64,000 bases of DNA, taken from assembly GCA_001938485.1 (NCBI GenBank), contig MQRK01196706.1:1-64000 (forward strand). The letters are read 5' to 3'. Both the position numbers and the translations under genes were made by a program. Under the pieces are notes generated by a model. It saw nothing but the letters and a program-made list of their open reading frames with translations, was not told where the DNA came from and did not search any database. The stretch's first letter is position 1, and every line of letters starts with the position of its first letter. This document shows positions 18,290 through 64,000 of this stretch, piece by piece. The stretch comes from Girardia tigrina (lineage: Eukaryota).

Positions 18290-19935
18290 TCAAAATAATC
18301 TAAATAGAAGGCTGGCAGGTTTCTGTAATTTTTTCCGATATTTTAGCAAATGATAGTTTGAAGTCAGTCAAATACAAGCAACATTTAAGAGTAAAGCAAC
18401 CTGAAGATGCGAGTAAGGGAAGTAATTTTTACAAAAGACTTAAAAAATCTCGAACTGATAAGATTAAATCATTAATAAAATATGTAACAGTTTCGTCAAA
18501 AGCTCAGAGAGTATCATTTGAAATATCCTTATTAATTGCTAAGGCAATGAATTCCTATAATATTTGTGACAAATTAGTACTACTAGAGAAAATTAAAATT
18601 TGAGTAATATTGCACGGTATATATTATGCCAAAAGTTTGAGAACAATACCATTATATCGTGACACAGTTAAATGAAGACTTGTTGAACTATCAAATAACA
18701 TAAAAGTGGCTGTTTGTCAAAATACAAGAATATGGTAAATTTGCTATTCAACTTGAAGAAACTACGAATATAAAGGATACAGTACAATTAATGGTACATG
18801 TCAGGTATTTCTAATAAAATAGATTTGTAGAGAGAATGTTATTTTGTCAAGCTATGAAAGGTCACGCGTCCTGGTAATGAAATTTTCAATTTAATAGATA
18901 ATTTTTTAAATATAATAATTTGTCTTGAATTAACTGTGTGGGAGTATATACAGATGGTGCCGGTGTAATAGTGTGAAATAGAATCGGGTTCAAAGCAAAG
19001 GTTTTAAATATTGAACGCCATGTTGACTTTACGCTTAGTATCATCCATCGTATAATTCTGGCAGTAAAAAAATTGGAATCGGAAGTAAATGCATTTTTAA
19101 ATGATGTAATTAAAATTTAAAATGTTATCGAATCTCGATCTTTAAGAAAAAGAGACTATGATAGTTTGCTTTTACATAAAGACGTTAAATGGGTATCAAG
19201 AGGAATAATAGTTCATCGAGTTTTCGACTTCATCTCTTTTTTAAAGAGGATAAACATTCCTTTTCAGAAAAATGTTCAAACGAGAAATAGATTTTAATTT
19301 TATGTTACCTTGTCGGCATTTTTGATAAAATAAATGGACTCAATATATAGCTCAAGGCAAAAACACAACATTTTAACCATGAGTGATATAATGAATAGTT
19401 TTTCTAAAATAAAATTAAGTTTTGGAAAAAGCAAATTGATGCAAAAAGATATGAAATGTTTCCATGCTTTAATGAATTTATGAGCACGTCAGATGCCTTT
19501 AAAACTATTGTTCATGTGATAATATTATCACAGCTGGAAGTACTTCAGAAAAATTTTTCAACTAGATTTCCCGATTTGAAACATAATGAGTTAAACAGTT
19601 TTCTAAATCCTTTCATAGTAGATGTAAAAAAGCTAATCTGGACATCAGTTATGAGGAACGACTGGTACACCTGGCCAAGCACATTATTGAAATCGAAATT
19701 TAACGAAGAAACAACTGAAAAATTGTGGCTTGAAGTGAGCGGAGAATATAAAAGTCTGTGCAAAAAAGCAATTGGCATCGTGTTACTTTTTGCTTCGACA
19801 TAATTTTGCGAGGAGTCATTTAATAGTTGAACGTTAAAAATTTAATTTCGCTCGGTTTAAATGTTGAAGATGAACTAAGAGTAGCAATCTCGAATTTTTC
19901 TTTCAAACTCTCTCTTAGATTCATTGATCTCATTG
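18290..19935 (+). mobile_element. hAT (Buster/Charlie-type) transposase pseudogene
   Basis: FAIQLEETT, CVGVYTDGA, IIHRIILA, LLHKDVKWVSRG, LCYLVGIF, LLFAST*FCEESF, LNVEDELRVAIS. Confidence 0.85.
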
Positions 19936-32062: not shown

Positions 32063-32107
32063 CTTTTTGTATAAAAGATGTTAAACTTTAAAAATTAAGA
32101 AAAATAC

Positions 32108-32756
32108 CTGGAAGGCTTTTAGGAACAAAATCTCCATAACCAACAGTGGTCATAGTGATAAGTGCCCACCATAAGCCATCGATAATTGACATAAATTGCG
32201 TGTCTGTATTACCACCCAGTCTTTCGGCATAATAGATAAAAGCGGCAAAAACCACAATAAAAACAAATAAGAAAAACATAAGAAGAACAAGTTCATTCAT
32301 ACTGGCTTGGAATGTGAGTATTAGGATCTTTAAGCCTGATATGTGTCGTGTAAGCTTAAATATTCGAAACAATCTAACAATATTAAATGTTTCGAAATAA
32401 ATATTAAATCTAATCAAACTATTAAGGTAAAAGAGAATCAAAGAACAATAAAAACTAATTAACGCAACTATATCTACGCAATTGATTGGCGATTTTAAAA
32501 AGGCAATGATGCTCGGCGTAGCAAACAAACGGGCGATTAATTCAATAGTAAAATATGCATTACAAATAAATTCAATGTAAAAAAATGCAATATTTGGATC
32601 TGGTAGGAATCCATCTCTTGCAGAAATTGTCCAGTTTGTCCCATTGGAGGTTGTATTTACAAATACTATATTGGCAACTTTGAAAACTGGCACAGATTTT
32701 AAGCAAAATGCAATGAGAGAAAGGATAATGAAAAAAACTGAGAAATAACCGAGAAT
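32108..32756 (-). CDS. Shaw: Shaw/Kv3 channel exon (S1-S5 and pore)
   Basis: Acceptor TTTTAG|ATT. ILGYFSVFFIILSLIAFCLKS..., S4 IVRLFRIFKLTRHISGLKIL, pore WWALITMTTVGYGDFVPKS. Donor CCAG|GTATTT, phase 1. Confidence 0.96.
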
Positions 32757-51557: not shown

Positions 51558-51785
51558 CTTTGCTAATTTGGAAGAATACGGCTCTTCCATTGTTTGCCAA
51601 AGCTTTGGTTGGTTTCTTTGCCAAAGTGACATTTCATTGTCTTGAAATCTGTCCAACAATCCGAATTTTTTATATAAATCTTCTTCGCTCATTTTGTCGG
51701 AATCTATGTCCACTTTGTCAAGCGTTGTTAAAATATCCTGAGTGCTTCGATGTAAAGTGTACGTCATCCAACAACACGGTTCTAC
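51558..51785 (-). CDS. Shaw: Shaw/Kv3 channel exon (end of T1 and T1-S1 linker)
   Basis: Acceptor TATAG|GTA, then VEPCCWMTYTLHR...WQTMEEPYSSKLAK, donor AAG|GTTATA. 228 nt, phase 0 at both ends, joins NQ|VEPCCW in frame. Confidence 0.95.
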
Positions 51786-52690
51786 CTATAATAATAAATA
51801 ACTAATTTAATAAAATATAATCTACGTAATATGAATCATTGATATATTGGTAAAAGATTGACATTCAGGAATTATATTTATAAAGTATTTAATATTATAT
51901 TATGCAGAACTAAGTCAAAAAATATAAACTCAAACTGAAGAAAAAGGCGAAGGTAGAGAGAGAATATTTAATGTCTCTTCTAAAATGAATAATAACGATT
52001 ATTATTATCATTGAATAAAATTTCATTGATTTTTCTCTAATTATTTTTCTTCCTCCATTTAGGGAAAAGGTTTACTTATTTTGTAGAAAGCATGAAGGGA
52101 ATTTACTGCTTCCTCTGTACAATTAATTATACAATAATACAAATAATAAGGATCATTTTAATCAAAACTATATAATAAAATACAGTATCCTGCCAACATA
52201 AGACAACAGAAACTCAAAGAGCTTCAACTTTTAATTGGAATGAAATAATGAATGTTTTTTTTTCAATCCATTTAAGATAAAATCGTAATTAGAGTTAATC
52301 AAAAAATTAGCAAATATAAAATGTACCAAATATAATCTCCTGTTTGTTCGACGTTAATATTTAATTAATAAAAAAAACGTTTTTGCTAAATTGAATAAAA
52401 GTTAAAATTTATATTCTTCAGTAGCGCTCAAAATGATACCGACAACATTTTAGTTTAAATGTTTTTTTTTAAAAAAATATTGCTTAAAGGACTTAATAAT
52501 ATTAACAATTTAAATATTGTTTTGTTCATTTTTTATCGGTATTTCCAAATTCATAAATCCTTTTTTATACAACTTTAACTATTTTCATAATTCGAAACAA
52601 AAAAAGATCATTTTACTACTTAAAATGATTAGGACAGTGTTATTAAAATTATATTTCTGCATATACAGGAAAATGGTGACTAGAACTATA

Positions 52691-52960
52691 CAGTAATGTT
52701 CGAAAAATAAAATATAATCAATATTTTGTTGGATATCCCTTTGACTTGATTACTGCCTGGTACCGGCGAGGCATACTGTCCACTAGATTGATGCAAACAT
52801 CAATTGGAATGCAGTTGATTTTTTCGAATAATTCCTACTCATTTGATGCCTTAAAAACAATCAACTCTCTTCCAACATATTCACAAAGATGTTCTATTGG
52901 GTTGAGATCTTGCGAAGGAGATGCCCATTCGAAAATTGACTCACAATTTTCTTACTCCAA
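52691..52960 (-). mobile_element. Tc1 3' fragment
   Basis: WASPSQDLNPIEHL...LVDSMPRRYQAVIKSKGYPTKY*. ta|cagt terminus. Confidence 0.8.
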
Positions 52961-53259
52961 TGTCCCCCAGCATATTCTGCACAGTTTTCTGGTTCACATT
53001 ATTTCTGTTTGACAGCTCTCTCTGAGTGATTCGTCTCTCTTTAACAATTATCGATACAAATTCCAATATTTCATCAGGAATTTCTTAAGCGCTCCCACTT
53101 CTTTCTTCGTCAAACACATTGCTCCTCCCAGAGGAAAACTCGAATAACGCTGCCAAATTCCACTGACTGGTACATTTTTTTTAAAGTTTACAGAAAATAA
53201 TGCTTTTAAGCATTAAAGACGTTAAACAAACTTGATATTATTTACCTAAATATATTTGT

Positions 53260-53600
53260 TGTACTATATTAAAAATGTATTGCTAATAACTCTTCTTTCA
53301 TATCAAAATTGTTTGTTATTGCGATTAGAAAATAATTAATTAATCAGTATCTTTAATATCACAGATTCCATCCAAAGCTATTCCAGAAATGATGTCTTAT
53401 ATAAAATTTAGTAACTTGGTATTTAGATTCTCATTAATAATTTCAATTCGCATTGTAATAGTATGACGGGAAAAATTAACATTTTCAAAATTAATTTTTA
53501 TTTTACATGCATCCATCAAACATGTTTTTAGAAATTCTCCTTCCAAAAAAGGTTTGCCTTTACTTCGATGTAAACAGGTGAACGTTTTGTTGAAAGTTGC
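53260..53600 (-). mobile_element. hAT (SPIN/GTF2IRD2-like) transposase fragment
   Basis: KGKPFLEGEFLKTCL...FSRHTITMRI...IALDGS. Confidence 0.7.
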
Positions 53601-53843
53601 CCTAGATTCAATTTGAATTGTGATATTAATAAAAATGTTAGTAATCATGCTAGAGTTCTTAATAAGTAATCTTAATGTTAATTAATCATAAGTAATGGTA
53701 ATATATGTAATCTGATGCTACTTTTAAAACATATATTAGCAGGGAGATGATATTTTTGCTTGTCAACATTTTTCAAGCGAACGTATATGAGAAAAATCTA
53801 CCAAATCACTACTTTATATGATACTTTAGGATTAAAGTTTTTA

Positions 53844-54680
53844 TTAGGTTGAGTCATGAATAACTTCCGTTTAGTTTCATACATTTATTTTTCAATTACA
53901 AAAGAAACTAATTTAGAATGTAATCTCCCTTATTTGTTTCTTGTTTTTAACTTATTGATTTTTTCTTCGTAAAACATGGCCGGTTTAGAGTGGAAGAAGC
54001 CAAGGGCAGCCTCATTCAGTGCCTGGTCTGAATCAAAAAATATTTCCATTTGAGAAATTCGGCAAGGAGTAGAAAAGATGATAATCTGTCGGAGCAATGT
54101 CCAGAAAGTATGGTGGATGAGGTAAAACAGACCAGCCATGTTCGAGAATTTTTTCTTGAGTCACCATGTGGTCTTGCATAATTGTGCAACAGAAGGACGT
54201 TTTTACGGTTGGCGAGTGCAGGGCATGTCTCCAAAAGTTTTTCGTGTACTCTTTGCAGTTGTTTAACATACATATCTGCAGTAACAGTTTCATTCCTGTT
54301 TAAAAACTCATAGTGAATGAAATCTTGGTCACCCCACCATACACACAACAAAGTTTTCTTCCCATGAATGTTCGCTTTAGGATCCGATAGAGGTGGTCGG
54401 CCTTTATCAAGACTCTACCTCTTTTGGGCGAAGTGACCCCTTTTTCATCACCTGTGACATTATTCTTGAAAAAAAATTCATTTTTTCTCTTGAGAGGAGA
54501 CATGTGGCAATCAACATCCTATCCGCTTTATTGTGTTCACTTAAATTACGGGGTACCCATTGTCTCAGTTTGCTTATTTTCCCCAATTTCTGTAGGTGGT
54601 AGCAAACAGTTGATTGTGACATATTAAGCTTCTCTGCTAATTCTCTCGTTGTTTGGCGCAGATTTTGTTGCAATAGTGAA
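53844..54680 (-). mobile_element. 5'-truncated mariner
   Basis: QWVPRNL, VTGDEK, MLCVWW, LHNYARPH, HPPYFLDIAPTDYHLF. TIR ttaggttgagtcatg. Confidence 0.88.
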
Positions 54681-54859
54681 TAATAATTAAAATAGACCAA
54701 ATATTATAATAGACGGGTTCTAATTGAGTCACTTTTGCAAATTACAGATGCAAAAGGCTTTTAACAACAATTCATCCACATATATATTATTTATTCCTTT
54801 TCAAGAATCCCTATCGTTTTTTAAATAACCCACGAAATCAACAGAGGCATCAAAATCGA

Positions 54860-57600
54860 AGATATGATATTGCAGAAATGCATGATGAAAACGATTACAA
54901 CGAATATGAAGAAACACGATCAAATGAATGAAACTCGAGGCAAAGAATGTTTACAGATAATAGACAAGTATACGACAAAGACCAGGGAAACGAGGATGCA
55001 CGATCACAAGGAGAGGTGATCAGTGTGCTTCACTAAAAAGTAAAAATGTGTGTGTATGTGATTGTGTATGTAATGGTATGTATAACTGTATGTGTGATTG
55101 TGTGTTGGAAGATACCTCTCTCGAAGTTTGTGAATTAGATTGTTGGAAAGAAGAATTTGAAACATACTGTTTTGATAAGGAGATAAAGACAAAATAGCAA
55201 AAGTTGAAACAGAAAGAAATGTTGAAAATATCAAAGCTTAATATTAGATATGACAAATTGAATGGGAGACCAAGCATTGAATTTAATACAAAGAATATGA
55301 ATGTTGAATGTCTTTTGGGTACCGGTGCCAAAGTAAATGTTGTTAAAGCAGATATACTTAAAAGTATGAAAGATGTTCAGATAAAGAAAACGAGTAAACG
55401 CATTCATTGTGCAAATGATTCAGAACTTATAAATTATGGAATTGTTAAATTAAACGTAATAATTGAAGGAGTACAAAAAATTATAGAGTTTTATGTAGTC
55501 AAAGAACTCAATCCAGAAATGATAGCAGGAGTTGACTTTTTGGACAAATTTGGAATAAAACTAAAGAAGGAAACTATAGATTCAAGTGACATATGGATGA
55601 TTAGTGCTAGTCTAACAGATGATGACAGACTAAAGAGAATTAAAGAAATATTTAACACAAAAGTTGACAACGAACTAATGAGACTATTAACAGAATATAA
55701 ATAAATATTCATGGCTGACAAGTGGGATGTTGGGAAAACTTCCTTAACGAAACACAAAATAGAAACTCATGGAGAACCAGTATTAGTGAAGCCTTATCGA
55801 TTACCACAACATTTTGAAGAGAAACTAGATGATGTCATTAGAAATTTTGAAGAAAATGGTATAATTGAAAAGTGTAGTTCTCCATTGAACTTCCATCTGG
55901 TGTGTGTATGGAAAAAAGAAAAACAAGACATCCGAGTATGTGTCAATTTTCGACAGTTAAATAAAATTACGGTAAGACCGGCATTCCCCATGCCAAATGT
56001 GGATGACATGTTAAACACGTTGAATGGAGCAAAATATTTTAGTACAATCGATCTGGGAAATACATATTATCAGGTTGAATTAGAAGAAGATTCAAAGATT
56101 AAAACTGCGTTTTCAACAAAGAATGGTCAATATTGTTTTAAAAGAATGCCTTTTGGAATTGCAGCGGCTCAGCTACCTTTCAAGAATTAATGGTGAAAGT
56201 TCTAGGAGATTTGAATTGGAAAGAAGCAGTCGTATATTTGGATGATATCTTGATTTTTGCAAAAGATAGAGAAGAACAACTTCAAAGAATACATAACATA
56301 TTTGAGAAAATTAAAGAATCCGGTTTGAGAATAAATCCAGAGAAATGTCAATTCTTAGTAGAAAAAACGAACTTTTTAGGATATGTCATAAGTAAAGAAG
56401 GTATTGAGACAGATAAAACAAAGATTGATGCAATTAGAAAATTTCAAAACCCATCATGTATCAAACATTTAAGAAGCTTTTTGGGTTTGACGAATTACTA
56501 CAGGAAATTCATAAATGATACGCTAGATATGCAAAGGTTTTAGAAGGCTTATGTGGTAAGAGCAAGGATAAAAAACTGCTTTGGACTGAAGAATGTGATG
56601 AAGCTTTTCAAAAATTAAAAGAAAGAATGATTAAGACACCAATATGGTTCCCATGAAATGAATAAACATGAACTTGGTTATTGATGATTACACTTTTATG
56701 ATGACTACGAAAAACGCTATTACACCACGGTTTCAAACATGGATAAATTTTCTTAGTGGTCTTGACATGAAAATAGAATATCGGAAAGGTGAGAAACATT
56801 CAAATGCTGACGCGATGTCTAGAAATTCTTGCGAATTGTGTAGCCAATGTCAGACGATGCATGAAGAAGCCAAGAAAGGAAAGATCAAGACGAGAATTCA
56901 TGCATTGAACGAAGAGTCGGAGGGTTTCAAATAACAAAATAATAATGAAGAAATAAAACAAATTGTTGAAGATATAAGAAAAGGGAAAACGAGGAAATGG
57001 ACACTAAAAAATGACATCGTGGCAACTCAGGACAAAAAAATACTGGATCCCAAATGAAAAACGAACAGATTTTATTGAAGGGATGCACAAGCTGTTATGC
57101 CATGCTGATAGTAAAAAAGTCTATAACTATCTTCGAGAAGATTTGGGACATGGAAAATATGAGGAATTTCATTAAAGAAGTAGTCCAAAGTTGTTTAAAT
57201 TGTCAAAAAAGAAAGACATTAACAGCTAAAACGAAAGAAAAACATATGAAATTGTCGGCAGATGAACCTTTTTAGAAAATATACATGGACTTCTGTGGAC
57301 CATTCAAAAGAAACATAAACGGATATCAATACGTACTTGCCATAGTAGACCAATTCAGTAGATATATTAGCCTGAATGCAATTGCTAGTCAAGATAAAAA
57401 AAACAGTTCGTAGAGGGATACTGGACAGATGGATATGGAAATTCGGACCTCCAAAGGAAATCCATGTTGACAGAGGAAAAACATTTGAATCGGCTTTGTT
57501 CAAGGATACAGTTAAAAGGTTCAAAGTCGAGATATTCTATTCAAGTCCATGTCATCATAATACAAATGGGATAGTGGAAAGACAATTTCGAACAATTAAA
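54860..57600 (+). mobile_element. Ty3/Gypsy pol remnant (PR-RT-partial RH-IN), no LTRs visible
   Basis: LLGTGA (protease), RVCVNFRQLN, KRMPFG, YLDD, LRSFLGLTNYYRKFI, YRKGEKHSNADAMSR, IYMDFCGP, IHVDRGKTF, NGIVERQFRT. Stops and frameshifts throughout. Confidence 0.93.
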
Positions 57601-57797
57601 TCCCTATCGGATTTTAAGTATCGTTTTAATTTTTGAATTAAAGATAAAAAAAATTTTAAATTAAGATTTAATTATAAAAGCAAAAAAATATATTGTAAAA
57701 TAAGTAAAAACGATAAAATGTGGTATAAAGTTTCAATATTAATAATTTTTAAAAATGTTTTAGATAAAATTTAAAAAAATAGATTTTTTTTCAGAGA

Positions 57798-58450
57798 TGT
57801 AATGTTTTATATCATGAATAAAATTCAAGGAAGAATGTAGAATTAAAAAACTAAAAATTAAAACTCTCTTTTTAGTAATATTCTGCATAAAATATTAAAA
57901 TTTAAATAGATTTTAAAAAAGCTGATTAAATTTAAACTAATAAAATTAATAAATAAAATAGATTTGAAAACAAATGAAATATAAAAACCGGAAAATATTT
58001 TAACATAATTTATTAAACTTTAAAATTAAATAAAAATAGAAAAAAAATAAATATAATAATAAATATTAAATTTTAATGCAGTTTAATAAAATGATTATTC
58101 AAAAGAAAATACAATATTTAAAATAAAGTTATATAATAAATAAATACAAAAATTAATATAACATATTTGAAGACAGTTTATGTTTATAATAGTTTTTAAA
58201 TTAAAAAATTAAATACAATATAAAATTTAAAAAAATAATAAAATAAAGATTTGATCAAAATATTTTTTTATAAACATATATTAATTAATTATTTTACTGA
58301 AAAAAAATAAATCCTAAAAATGAGAAAGGGGAAAAAGGAGAAGTAATGTTTTATAAATATTATATCATGAATAAAATTCAAGGAAGAATGTAGAATTAAA
58401 AAAACTAAAAATTAATACTTTCTGTTTAGTAATATTCTGCATAAAATATT
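57798..58450. repeat. About 100-bp direct duplication (about 57798-57900 and 58343-58450)
   Basis: atatcatgaataaaattcaaggaagaatgtagaattaaaaaactaaaaattaa...tagtaatattctgcataaaatatt occurs twice. Confidence 0.75.
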
Positions 58451-59479
58451 AATTGAAAATTTAAAATATAATAATTTCTTTAATGAATTTATATTTAATT
58501 AAAAACTGTTTTTTTAATATTTTTGCCTGTACAATTTGCAACGAATTTAAGAAATATTAATGACTGTTCAAATATATAATTTAATTAAAAAAGCTTTGTT
58601 TTTTTAATTAATTAATAATTGCAAAATATATTATTTTATTATGAAAGTTATATTGTTTCTGTAGATTTTCAGAATTTTTTATTAATATTGACTGAGATCA
58701 AATTAACAAGGTTCAATTAAAAAAAATAAGTTTTATAATTTTTTCAAATGAAAAATTTAAGTTTTATCAGTTTAAATAGTTCAAGATTGCTTCATTTATG
58801 TACGAAGGAAACGATATTTAAAAAAATAACTAAATTTTTCTATAATGATAATATTGTATATTAAATATTTAATTTTGTGGAAAAAAAGGAAAATGGAAAA
58901 ATGAAATGAATTTTTGTTTGAATATTCAGTGTGATCGGTTTTCGAATTAGGGAGCGTTTTTAATAATAAATTGTTAATTGTTGTTTAAGTTATTCCAGAT
59001 TACAAGCTCTCCGGGTAGAATGAACGACGTGAGGATTATTTTGGATCACTAGGAAAAATTTGATAGAAGCCGAAGCTTTGAGGTATGTCAGAAGAAATTC
59101 TCGATGATCATGAAGATTCAGAAGATTGCTGACCCAGCTCCGTATCTCCTTTTTTATTAACGCAGGTGTCGTTGAATATTTAGATGGAGCTGGATTAGAA
59201 GAAACAAGGGTGTTGTGATGAAGTTTTCAGAATACTTAGCAATTCATTAATTTATAATTTATTATGTTATTTACAGCTTATCATTATTCTATATTGTAAT
59301 TTATAAATATATTATATTCTGTATTATATGATCTCATTAAAATAAAATTTCTTCATGATATTTTGATAAAATTGATAATTACAATTTAGGTTTTGTAATA
59401 ATAATTTTGAACGTTTATTTATTAGTATTCTCCCTCTTAAAAGTAGGTTATAAATCGACTTATCACTTTCCCTGCGATT

Positions 59480-59640
59480 ATATTTAGTTTATCAATGTAA
59501 ATGTAAGGGGTGTGACGCCATATACATCAGAGAGAATATCGTCATCTCTGTAAACGGATTCTGGAACATAATCGTAAAGAACGTTGACGGTTGTTCCGTC
59601 GAAATTGATCACAATATAATTTGATGAAAGTTTTGATTTT
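59480..59640 (+). mobile_element. Internally deleted derivative of the 42835 PLE, with the 3' half of a hammerhead
   Basis: Matches 43013-43100, then jumps to gacggttgttccgtcgaaattgatcacaat (corresponds to 43387-43416). Confidence 0.8.
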
Positions 59641-59730
59641 AAAAATTACATTATGTTTATGCTACTAATTATTTCTCATTTTAAACATTTTTGACGAGAA
59701 GATAAAAGGAAGACTAGTACAAATGAAGAG

Positions 59731-59845
59731 GTTAGTGGTCGCAGTTGGGTACGCCGGATCTCATCCGATCTCCAAAGTTAAGCAACCAACGGCCGCGTTA
59801 GTATTTATACTGGTGATCGATAGGAAAATTGCGGCGCCATTGAAT
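59731..59845 (+). rRNA. 5S rRNA-like sequence (pseudogene or SINE head)
   Basis: gccggatctcatccgatctccaaagttaagcaacc..ggccgcgttagta..tggtga..ggaa...gcggcgccattga follows 5S A-box/IE/C-box order. Termini are complementary. No T-run terminator follows. Confidence 0.7.
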
Positions 59846-60459
59846 ACTAGTCAGGTAAGACTAACTGTATGCTACAGATACCATGTAAACCTGTAATACT
59901 TGTCCCATTGTTGGAAGGATGGCAACTAAACCGGTTCCCTCCCCGAGAGCCACCTGGGTGAAGAGGGTGTGTGGACACCTAAAAATAAAAACCTAGTAAA
60001 ACATTGGAGCCAACGGCCATACATACCTGGAGAGGAAATAGGCACCATCAGGTTCCTTGCCAACTGAGACACTCAAAAATATTCAAAAACGAGTCATAAA
60101 TACTTGTGCGTAATTGAGTGCACCCACGCCTTAACGGCTACGTTCATTACTATGTATATATTCTCTTATCGTCATACAAAACGACGGAACTTGTCACCAC
60201 ACAGTCAACAAAGGCAATTGGGGAGAACTTTAGCTCCAAATCCATTGCTCCACCAATCAGCAAACTTGTGGAAATTTCTTCTCGTTATAAGGGGAAACCT
60301 GTTTGAGTTCCGTGAGTCGGAAAGTTGCGAGGTGGTGAATGCGCTTCATAATGCAAATAAATCATCATCGGGGTACTTAAATATAACATATAAAGATATG
60401 CTTTATTGTGATCATGGCGGAGTAATGTTTGCCAAGTTATATAATAGGGTAATAAACCC

Positions 60460-60525
60460 AGTACAGGATTCACAGTTCATATTTTGACCAAATTTAACAT
60501 TTTGTATAGATAACGGAAAATACGG
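60460..60525 (+). mobile_element. pogo-type element right end
   Basis: Ends ggaaaatacgg|ta and shares sequence with the MITE at 30827-31029. Confidence 0.55.
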
Positions 60526-60619
60526 TAAATTTATATATTTTAAGAATTGAATTATTGGAAATTTATGGTTATGGGTTTTGTTTACTGATGAGTAGGATTG
60601 AGAAGTCGCATAATGAGTG

Positions 60620-61620
60620 TTGATGGCAAGAGTTTGGACGCGGCGCAGCCGCGGAGCCCTGATGCTAAGACCGCGGAGACACTGGGACGATAGTGGGAGA
60701 AACACAAAAAAAGCTTATATATTTTTTAATCTAAAACATCAGATTGCTCTTTTGTCTGTGCTTTCGACACTGTTTCTCGACCCACCTTGATTTTTGGTTT
60801 TAAAAACGCTTTGTCATTTTAGTGACTTGCGGTACAAGAAAATGAGCAATTTTTAAAGCTTAAAATTATCAGGAAGAGTGGGTTGGTCTTCTTTTGGAGT
60901 GTGAATCGAAAAAATTGTGTGTTGCAAATTCGGTTGGAAATATTTGCTTGAGAAAGAGCTTATTTTGTCCGTCCTGATTGATCTTAGCAGGCACTTTGTC
61001 GAGATTAGAGCTACCACAGTGCGGACAGAAGATATCGGGGAAGCAGAACTGTTTGAAGCAAGACCAGCAATATGAGACAAATATGCGCGGTTCTTTGATT
61101 ATCAGGCCATGTATGAACAAGATATTTACTCCCATCTTTACTAAAATGTTCTGCATTACAAAATGGGTAGTTAATCAACCGATCGTCGACACCGAGTCCA
61201 CACTCACTAAATCTAACTCCGGCCCCGACTTCATGTCGTTGAAATTATCGATTGTCCTAGTTTTTCGATTCGTTTGACGTGTCTTCATTTGATTCAAATT
61301 TGAGCTTATTGATTGAATCGATTTTTAACCAATTCAAAGCGTTCTCCAAGACACATTCTTTTCTTTTATCACTCTTATTTCTGCAGTTGACTGGAGGGAA
61401 TCCGAATTGTCATGATGAACACAGAGAAATCGCGTTGTTTTCACTTTCCTCTTCTTTACCTGGGCGCCATATCGCTGACAATTGAAATTTTTTTAACATC
61501 TTCAAATCTCCTAATTGTGTGAAGATCCCGAGTACGGTGTTCGCATATTTTTCCACGTTTTCTAAAACTCTGTTTTTGTGTTCGGATCCGAAACTACCAC
61601 ATAATTAATGATTTTCAAAT
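60620..61620 (-). pseudogene. NOB1: NOB1 (20S pre-rRNA D-site PIN endonuclease) pseudogene nested in the Shaw intron
   Basis: IG*LTTHFVMQNILVKMGVNI (cf. GCLTTDFAMQNVLLQMG). Zn ribbon CWSC...FCPHCG..L.KV. Upstream EKYANTV..FTQLGDL, downstream RQKSN and VSP. In-frame stop and frameshifts. Confidence 0.85.
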
Positions 61621-62227
61621 GTATTTTGTTTGTTAATACACGCAAAAAAGTGATCGCAATGGAAAATAATGAACAACAAGCTCAATCACGTATATAAATT
61701 TATTTTTCCCACAATTCCTTTTACAAAATTTCCTACGTTAAAATAATAAAATTAATATTTTTACAAACTATTTAGTTATTTTAATCTATTTAAATCATAT
61801 TAAATATTATGCTCCTTAAAAATATGCGTCACAGAGCCCCCGAATAAACAACATAATTATATAAACAAAATTTGTTTTGAGAATTGATTTTGTGAAAAAA
61901 AGTACTGACTTTCTATTTATTGGAGTCACTCAAATTTTCAAAAAAGATTAGAGAACAAAGTTTGACTCGATCACAAACTTCAGACCATATTAGAATAGAC
62001 AATCATTAAATGGAAATCTGTTTTATTTAGGAACAAACATAGAATATAATGATCACAAATTAGAACAGCAAGCCATTGTCTGGAATGAAGAAACTTTGTA
62101 AAATGTTTTACAATTTATGGGTTGTTTTGAAAGTTTAAAGATCACAGAGTACTCTTTATTGAAACATTTTCCTCGTGATTCTCTTGTATTTATATATATT
62201 TATATCTTAAAGCTTTTTTATATAATT

Positions 62228-62269
62228 ATTGGACATGTTTCGATGTTTACATACATCATCATCAGCAAT
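62228..62269 (-). ncRNA. Minimal type I hammerhead ribozyme (sense to Shaw pre-mRNA)
   Basis: Reverse complement: attg-CTGATGA-t-gatgt(atgtaa)acatc-GAA-acatgt-C-caat. Stems I and II are paired, helix III is palindromic, GUC cleavage site. Confidence 0.85.
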
Positions 62270-62999
62270 TTTTGGATATTTAGTATATGAATATTGAATA
62301 GTTTGAATAATACAATTTTAACAGATATATTTACTTTAAAAGGTAACGAAAAAATTAATTATTATTATTTATCAAAGTATTATTGGGTAATAATGGCAAA
62401 AATATTTTACTTAAAAATTTTAAGTATTGAAATAACCTTACTTTGCCCATTCTGAATGTTACTTGATGGGTTGTAGTGTCTTATTAGTAGAGATTCACAA
62501 AACTGTCGTTCGTAATGTGAATAAAAACCCTTTTGTAGAACAGAAAACTCATCTTTTGAAATGGATGAGGTTCTATCCTTACAACATAACCAATGATCAA
62601 GAACCTTACTCGATCGACTCATTTGCGAGTGCTCGCTAATCCGGGTTTTGAGATGACGATTTGTCTCTGAAGAATACAAACAAATCATTAAAATTCCATA
62701 TTCTGAAGGATTTAGAGCGTTTAAGAAGAGTATTTGTAGAACAATAAGTAGTGCTAAAGTAGTCTCTGTCACATCCTAAGTTCAAAGTTTTCTCTCAAAC
62801 AAATCGAAAACAGTTTGTGATTTGCAAGCTAATCTGGTATATAAATTTAATTGTCAAAACTCGTACATCGGAGAGACAAATCGTCATAATACTTTGATAA
62901 ATAATAATAATTAATATTTTCGTTACCTTTTAAAGTAAATATATCTGTTAAAATTGTATTATTCAAACAATTCAATATTCATATACTAAACATCCGAAA

Positions 63000-63041
63000 A
63001 TTGCTGATGATGATGTATGTAAACATCGAAACATGTCCAAT
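63000..63041 (+). ncRNA. Minimal type I hammerhead ribozyme
   Basis: attg-CTGATGA-t-gatgt(atgtaa)acatc-GAA-acatgt-C-caat. Predicted cleavage after C63037. Confidence 0.85.
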
Positions 63042-63081
63042 AATTATATAAAAAAGCTTTAATCATATATTAAATATATAA

Positions 63082-63124
<43 letters not shown>

Positions 63125-63789
63125 AATTTATATATATTTATATACGTAATGTATAACTATGAACATCGACATGATCAACTAAAGTCTTGATCGGATTCTG
63201 TGTTACTGCATTTCGTTGTAACTTGATTGTGATTTATGTTTGGATATCGACAAATCAATATCATAACAATTACATTCTTCATCACATTACCCCCTTCTTA
63301 CAATCAAACAATGAGTAAAAGGATCTCCCAACATAACAAGAGAGAGAAGCTGTGATCGAATTACACTCGAATATCTTAATTGTTCTTATAAACTTACAGG
63401 GTATGGAGATGACATATAGATGTCGTAAAAGTAAAACTTCAAAAAATTGCAATAATAATACAATAAAATTAACTGAGAGAAAAATAAAAGAGTAAATCTT
63501 TAAAAAAAAATAACAGAACTTTTTTGTTCTGTCTTCAAAAATATTATTACTAGTTATAAAAAGTTGTATCAAGACAAAACTAAAATTAGAACTGTATTTT
63601 TTTGTGTCCCATAAAGTAAGATTGATTCTTGAACGGCTATTAAATATTCATTAGTTTTATTAATCTCGGAGACGTATTCTACTAATATGTTAAATTATTG
63701 TGTTTTGTTAATCATAACCAATTTGGAAGATAAATTAGTAAATTATCTATTGAATACTTATAAAACAATTAATATAATAAAAAAATTAC

Positions 63790-64000
63790 TTGATTCGAAT
63801 CAAGACCCCAAAAATCGAGTTCTTCCTCAAACAAAGGACCACAAACGTCATTTGGATAGTGAAGTTTCCCTGTTCGATAATAGTTAAGAATTTGGGAGAA
63901 AACATTGGGATGTCTGTCGAAAAAATACTCATTTAAAATTGGATCATAGTTGGCCAGAGCTTCGGTCAATTTTGAAAGTCTAGTAGCGGGAATTTTTTTC
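63790..64000 (-). CDS. Shaw: Shaw/Kv3 K+ channel, T1 (BTB) domain exon; continues beyond the window
   Basis: [69 protein letters not shown] is the Shaw T1 signature. Donor CAA|GTAATT at 63789, phase 0. Confidence 0.95.

Follow-up and report, generated by a model that had tools for sequence, protein, structure and literature searches.

The closest described counterparts of the locus analyzed here are Penelope-like elements (PLEs) of the EN+ Penelope/Poseidon type. PLE insertions generally have an inverted, 5'-truncated copy beside their 5' end, and the tail is one-sided (Craig et al., 2021, PMC8557442). The extra 3' tail is a PLE signature and has been explained in work on Poseidon PAc of Anolis, where both target strands are cleaved and extended and where cleavage by the hammerhead ribozyme required protein (Frangieh et al., 2024, PMC11167929). 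In Schistosoma, dual minimal hammerheads on opposite strands, about 100-700 bp apart, were published in 2014. Single minimal hammerheads were inactive in vitro and dimers cleaved little (Cervera and de la Pena, PMC4209133). Hammerhead-bearing, non-coding units derived from PLEs have also been described as non-LTR retrozymes, which are tandem, same-strand and amplified (bioRxiv 10.64898/2026.07.22.740005).

The window considered here is the whole stretch of 64,000 nt of Girardia tigrina DNA that was analyzed, and near one end it carries a divergent pair of hammerheads within an intron (Table 1). With high confidence, the locus can be read as a dead insertion of an EN+ element that is abundant in this genome, made up of two 5'-truncated Penelope copies in head-to-head arrangement. 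The divergent layout is ordinary and already published for Penelope elements. As with the Penelope/Poseidon-type EN+ PLEs (PMC8557442), head-to-head 5'-truncated copies appear as inverted terminal repeats, the target is AT-rich and microsatellite-like, the tail is optional in the family, and an RT precedes a C-terminal GIY-YIG with CxxC. In contrast, the window copy has extra deletions of 271 and 9 nt and a tail at neither end. Poseidon PAc (PMC11167929) likewise has a hammerhead at the element end and two classes of 3' end, with and without a tail, and extension from both target strands would be common to both.

The hammerheads themselves resemble those of Cercyon of Schistosoma mansoni and other metazoan PLEs in the 4-bp stem I, the extra base before stem II and the G10.1-C11.1 pair. 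Also shared with metazoan PLE hammerheads are the palindromic helix III, the thousands of copies and the spacing of opposite-strand pairs by a few hundred bp (PMC4209133). However, stem II is 5 bp in the window vs 7-8 bp in those ribozymes, and the pair spacing of 739 nt differs from the systems described there. A further difference is a small palindromic insertion in helix III, of the kind described for Drosophila, rotifer and shrimp elements (PMC4209133).

Table 1. Positions in the window of the cassette, its ribozymes and junctions, and the surrounding host gene. The stop codon, the exons and the intron limits are as read from the sequence.
Feature	Position	Strand	Description
Left copy	62207..62667	-	5'-truncated Penelope, 461 nt: ETNRH codons, GIY-YIG C-terminal half, 3' UTR, hammerhead end
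Left hammerhead	62228..62269	-	Minimal type I, identical in sequence to the right one; sense to host pre-mRNA
Stop codon of left GIY-YIG half	62407-62409	-	
ETNRH 15-mer, inverted copy	62653-62667	-	Exact match to the plus-strand 15-mer
Junction 1, head-to-head inversion point	62667..62668	.	2-nt microhomology; exact match also on contig G000:C95980
Right copy, 5' part	62668..62887	+	Linker and GIY-YIG N-terminal half, ends at ETNRH
Empty 11-bp LINE target, YIG codons	62865..62875	+	Unoccupied in window
ETNRH 15-mer	62873-62887	+	Exact match to the inverted copy
Junction 2, 271-nt deletion relative to left copy	62886..62887	+	2-nt microhomology; single-copy in genome
Right arm	62886..63062	+	Final 177 nt of the element
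Right hammerhead	63000..63041	+	Minimal type I; predicted cleavage after C63037
Pore exon, Shaw/Kv3-type channel gene	32091-32756	-	
Exon starting VEPCCW, Shaw/Kv3-type channel gene	~51640-51785	-	
Host intron, Shaw/Kv3-type potassium channel gene	51786..63783	-	~12 kb
BTB/T1 exon, Shaw/Kv3-type channel gene	63772-63999	-	Ends near 63784

The Penelope family in the genome

The genome searched is AT-rich and comprises 1.43 Gb in 255,254 contigs. Searching it with the locus stretch returned 3,359 candidates, the best at 95-97% identity, and the comparison set of 29 other loci was chosen by similarity only. In the family copies L003, L022 and L013, a single ORF encodes a PLE-type RT followed by a C-terminal GIY-YIG, of which the window copy retains the endonuclease end only. 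The longer copies have the RT motifs MGSPLAP and YVDD upstream of GIY-YIG in the same frame. The Pfam matches to the family were weak, with E = 0.0011 for the RT fragment and E = 1.5e-4 for the GIY-YIG of an intact collinear copy (22.4 bits vs a cut-off of 22.6), and the split GIY-YIG halves of the locus went unrecognised by Pfam. Two cysteines lie between GIY and YIG in the CCHH motif (VY..C..C..SYIG..R..EH..H) of L005, L008 and L013, a motif that the 9-nt deletion disrupts in the right copy of the window. By eye, no cysteine motif was seen in the linker, where Neptune/Nematis have a zinc finger. The hammerhead of the family is located in the terminal repeat, as in EN+ PLEs.

The tail, which is optional and 30-40 bp long in EN+ PLEs, is carried by 16 of the 34 hammerhead ends in the family. 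It is absent from the left and right copies of the window, both of which end about 20 nt short of the usual family 3' end. Divergent hammerhead pairs occur at 5 of the 29 other loci, 619-1,226 nt apart and in each case with a tail on one end only. Inverted pieces that lack a second ribozyme were seen at several more family loci. Genome-wide, divergent pairs of this layout probably number in the hundreds. The earlier, sequence-only reading is supported in that the locus belongs to a Penelope-like element, carries minimal hammerheads and has an inverted partner on its 5' side.

Anatomy of the cassette

At 62207-62383 and 62886-63062 lie the inverted arms, each 177 nt long, 98% complementary and 502 nt apart, and the hairpin that they form is far beyond chance expectation (z = -29). 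Direct comparison of both arms confirmed the reported four mismatches, at right-arm positions 62916, 62969, 62991 and 62996, none of them inside the 42-nt ribozyme. The left copy is 96-97% identical to collinear family copies. The right copy begins about 205 nt farther upstream in the element than the left one, runs to ETNRH, skips 271 nt and resumes with the final 177 nt. Its plus-strand endonuclease half contains a stop at 62777-62779, and a 9-nt deletion near 62852-62856, flanked by repeats of 5 nt, removes part of the CxxC present in other copies; the sequence-only reading mentions neither. GIY-YIG halves on opposite strands and an inverted ETNRH 15-mer are present as the sequence-only reading described them. 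The 15-mer is not the junction sequence; the true junctions share 2 nt each.

Junctions and history of the insertion

Junction 2 has one occurrence in the genome when up to 2 mismatches are allowed. Junction 1 is found on two contigs, that of the window and C95980. The genome-wide search that had been proposed for the same inverted cassette thus yielded no further copy, and the single-copy junction 2 indicates that the cassette has not spread. An amplified mini-element or non-LTR retrozyme was rejected on the grounds that junction 2 is single-copy and the hammerheads are on opposite strands. Although PLE-derived, hammerhead-bearing and non-coding like the non-LTR retrozymes, the cassette is divergent and single-copy where these are tandem and amplified.

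The second contig is informative about the order of events. At G000:C95980:250-561, junction 1 is present, the segment that matches has 9 nt more and stays collinear beyond ETNRH, and neither deletion is found; its match to the left copy ends after about 30 nt, at the contig end or by divergence. Because this segment is longer and collinear through ETNRH, it points to a later deletion in the window copy. On the simplest reading, C95980 would be an allele or sister copy still in the original state, its arms about 460 bp long around a centre of 205 bp. Template switching at ETNRH microhomology, as first suggested, is not supported, since each true junction shares 2 nt and C95980 is collinear past ETNRH. 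The 15-mer is instead the overlap of the two copies and would be a remnant of the inner end of longer arms. In the folded transcript it lengthens the 177-bp stem across a one-sided gap.

The insertion was described as recent, and it does appear fairly young, the arms, up to the terminal A-run, differing from the majority sequence of the family by 1-3 substitutions. Both arms have the shorter form of this A-run, which is also present in 15 of 47 other copies, and apart from A-run length they share no private variants. The arms are 97.5% identical, a value equalled or exceeded by the right arm against 14 of 31 other copies, so that one common template is unproven from the sequence.

Based on this evidence, the following series of events is proposed. 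The element would have integrated into AT-rich intronic DNA, with reverse transcription primed on both target strands near the hammerhead 3' end. Two short cDNAs, of about 460 and 690 nt, would then have met head to head and been joined through a 2-nt microhomology, giving the usual arrangement, a 5'-truncated copy beside an inverted 5'-truncated copy, with arms of about 460 bp. Later changes in the right copy, in an order that is conjectural, would include a 271-nt loss that begins 15 nt into the arm, the loss of a further 9 nt and the gain of a stop.

A single-step origin is an unlikely alternative, in which a twin-priming-like inversion with a 15-nt duplication and a 271-nt template jump would have taken place during integration, with no later deletion. 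This comes near the sequence-only reading, minus the 15-nt microhomology. A short duplication at the inversion point is typical of L1 twin priming, and internal inversions with short overlaps are found in the family copies L002, L003 and L004. However, C95980 has junction 1 but neither the 271-nt nor the 9-nt gap.

It is similarly doubtful that the cassette is the scar of a LINE endonuclease breaking a Penelope copy or its cDNA. Junction 1 falls 8 nt inside the target site (11 bp) of a LINE that inserts into this family, and if the scar reading were true, this hyperparasite would also rearrange its host element without inserting. Breaks within 5 nt of the LINE site were found in only 2 other copies (L006 and L016) of about 17 insert-free loci, which is too few to distinguish from chance.

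That junction 2 or the entire inversion was created by misassembly at a long inverted repeat is considered very improbable. The assembly is fragmented (255,254 contigs), inverted PLE structures hamper short-read assembly (PMC8557442) and junction 2 was found only once. Nevertheless, junction 1 is on two contigs, and a DNA run, which may be the source sample, contains 0.78 of the sampled words from 61800-63400. Since the arms differ at four positions, they were not collapsed in assembly, which also argues against an artefact.

The minimal hammerhead ribozymes

Each 42-nt hammerhead of the locus consists of a 4-bp stem I, the CUGAUGA core, one extra U, a 5-bp stem II opening with G-C, GAAA, a palindromic helix III and GUC. 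The conserved core, short stem I, palindromic helix III and NUH triplet are all present, and the intact, identical minimal type I hammerhead claimed for each arm was confirmed with all core parts on both strands. In the Rfam search that had been suggested as a check, the hammerhead models missed the locus ribozymes under both gathering and E-value thresholds and gave no score to either. For the isolated hammerhead, the predicted probability of formation is about 0.7 for stem I and about 0.98 for stem II, and the fold energy is unremarkable relative to shuffled sequences (z about -0.8).

The sequence-only reading treated two identical, intact ribozymes as something special. This is not supported, because the exact 34-nt hammerhead core occurs 2,063 times genome-wide (0 for the reversed control), so that identical ribozymes are the family default. 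Similarly, the probability that four mismatches all fall outside 42 of 177 nt is 0.33, which makes the avoidance of the ribozyme uninformative on selection. Selection on the ribozymes was accordingly rejected at this locus, their intactness being expected by chance. Family-wide, divergence is 3.2% inside vs 6.3% outside the ribozyme, a difference confounded by misalignment of the A-run and by older subfamilies.

On either strand, the antisense arm of a cassette transcript is transcribed first and is predicted to pair with the sense arm. The predicted probability of stems I and II in the cassette fold is 0.000 on both strands, vs about 0.7 and 0.98 for the isolated hammerhead. This value, together with the single-copy junction 2, speaks against a compact unit giving a ribozyme on either strand. 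No same-strand hammerhead partner was found within the 64-kb window. Cleavage by such ribozymes depends on a partner on the same strand, and at this locus both are predicted to be locked in the 177-bp duplex with the antisense arm. The locus ribozymes would then be passengers that arrive with each 3' end and presumably do not cleave. The locus is a clear example of divergent hammerhead pairs predicted to silence themselves, and the effect of the cassette, if any, is likely that of a long intronic hairpin.

Least probable of all is a bidirectional ribozyme module under selection, either acting on the potassium channel pre-mRNA as a regulator or mobile as a non-autonomous unit. In its favour, both cores are intact, and the left ribozyme is in sense orientation to the host transcript, with the donor site about 1.5 kb away. 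Against it, that intactness is expected by chance among 2,063 exact cores, the cassette is single-copy, its ribozyme stems are sequestered in the predicted fold, and the same-strand partner that minimal hammerheads need is lacking within the window.

The palindromic helix III also contains an AUG (window 63031-63036), which opens a frame through the tail in family copies with a longer A-run. This AUG may be the ORF start of the element, by analogy with Anolis PAc, where the ORF start overlaps the hammerhead.

A LINE that targets the Penelope family

At 11 of the 29 loci, a foreign insert occupies one Penelope site in the YIG codons. The 3' end of the inserts is fixed, their 5' ends vary and about 11 bp of the target is duplicated. 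The inserts encode an RT followed by C-terminal C2H2 fingers. Specificity differs by family, since 25 of the 30 top copies of insert family 1a terminate on the Penelope site vs 5 of the 19 copies of family 1b, whose remaining ends are at other sites, mostly beginning AC. Pattern counts across the genome, made with slightly different mismatch limits, gave 4,264 downstream half-sites, 2,015 uninterrupted sites and at least 1,182 family-1 junctions. Targeting of the Penelope YIG site by a LINE is thus well supported, and a large share of the family's endonuclease genes is interrupted at a single site by a LINE family.

The contig L081 (ENA ERZ2271576) has a 3.8-kb LINE copy between both Penelope halves (L081:73-3873). 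In this copy, Pfam matched a fragment of an APE-type endonuclease at E = 0.002, which is below the cut-off. From the first base after the duplication, the copy has a 5' HDV-like ribozyme (L081:83-165), matched by two Rfam models at 27-31 bits, below their cut-offs. Further loci with a LINE at the Penelope site are L042:500-2409, L009, L020, L022, L034 and L048. From its motifs, the LINE reads as RTE-like. No description of a Penelope-targeting LINE was found in a search of open-access literature, with Repbase outside its scope. The Penelope-LINE system would make target switching and the control of one transposon by another directly testable.

Several other inserts were observed. Inserts of about 400 nt at the same Penelope site (L010:470-872 and L018:1970-2370, both minus strand) are without an evident ORF, and their 3' end is 86% like that of the LINE. 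This family is a probable non-autonomous partner of the LINE, as judged from its sequence. Its 5' end resembles the LINE ribozyme by eye and had no Rfam match. At L019:1-210, L007, L056 and L059, inserts of different families follow one another in tandem at a single target site, in some cases with the duplicated target between them. In L082 (ENA ERZ2271649), a LINE relative with a similar 3' end is not adjoined by Penelope sequence, which indicates that targeting is not universal in the LINE lineage.

The host gene and its surroundings

The introns of the Shaw/Kv3-type channel gene are about 12 and 19 kb long. Because the cassette lies in an intron of this minus-strand gene, the left ribozyme is probably transcribed with the channel pre-mRNA. 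The channel intron also contains a solitary, divergent 5S rRNA-like sequence (window 59731-59845, plus strand, 52.3 bits), either a pseudogene or the head of a 5S-derived element. By eye, the translations of the window further include Gypsy-type protease and RT-like fragments (55198-56540, plus strand), a mariner transposase-like fragment (54019-54414, minus strand) and a hAT-like transposase fragment (19408-19800, plus strand).
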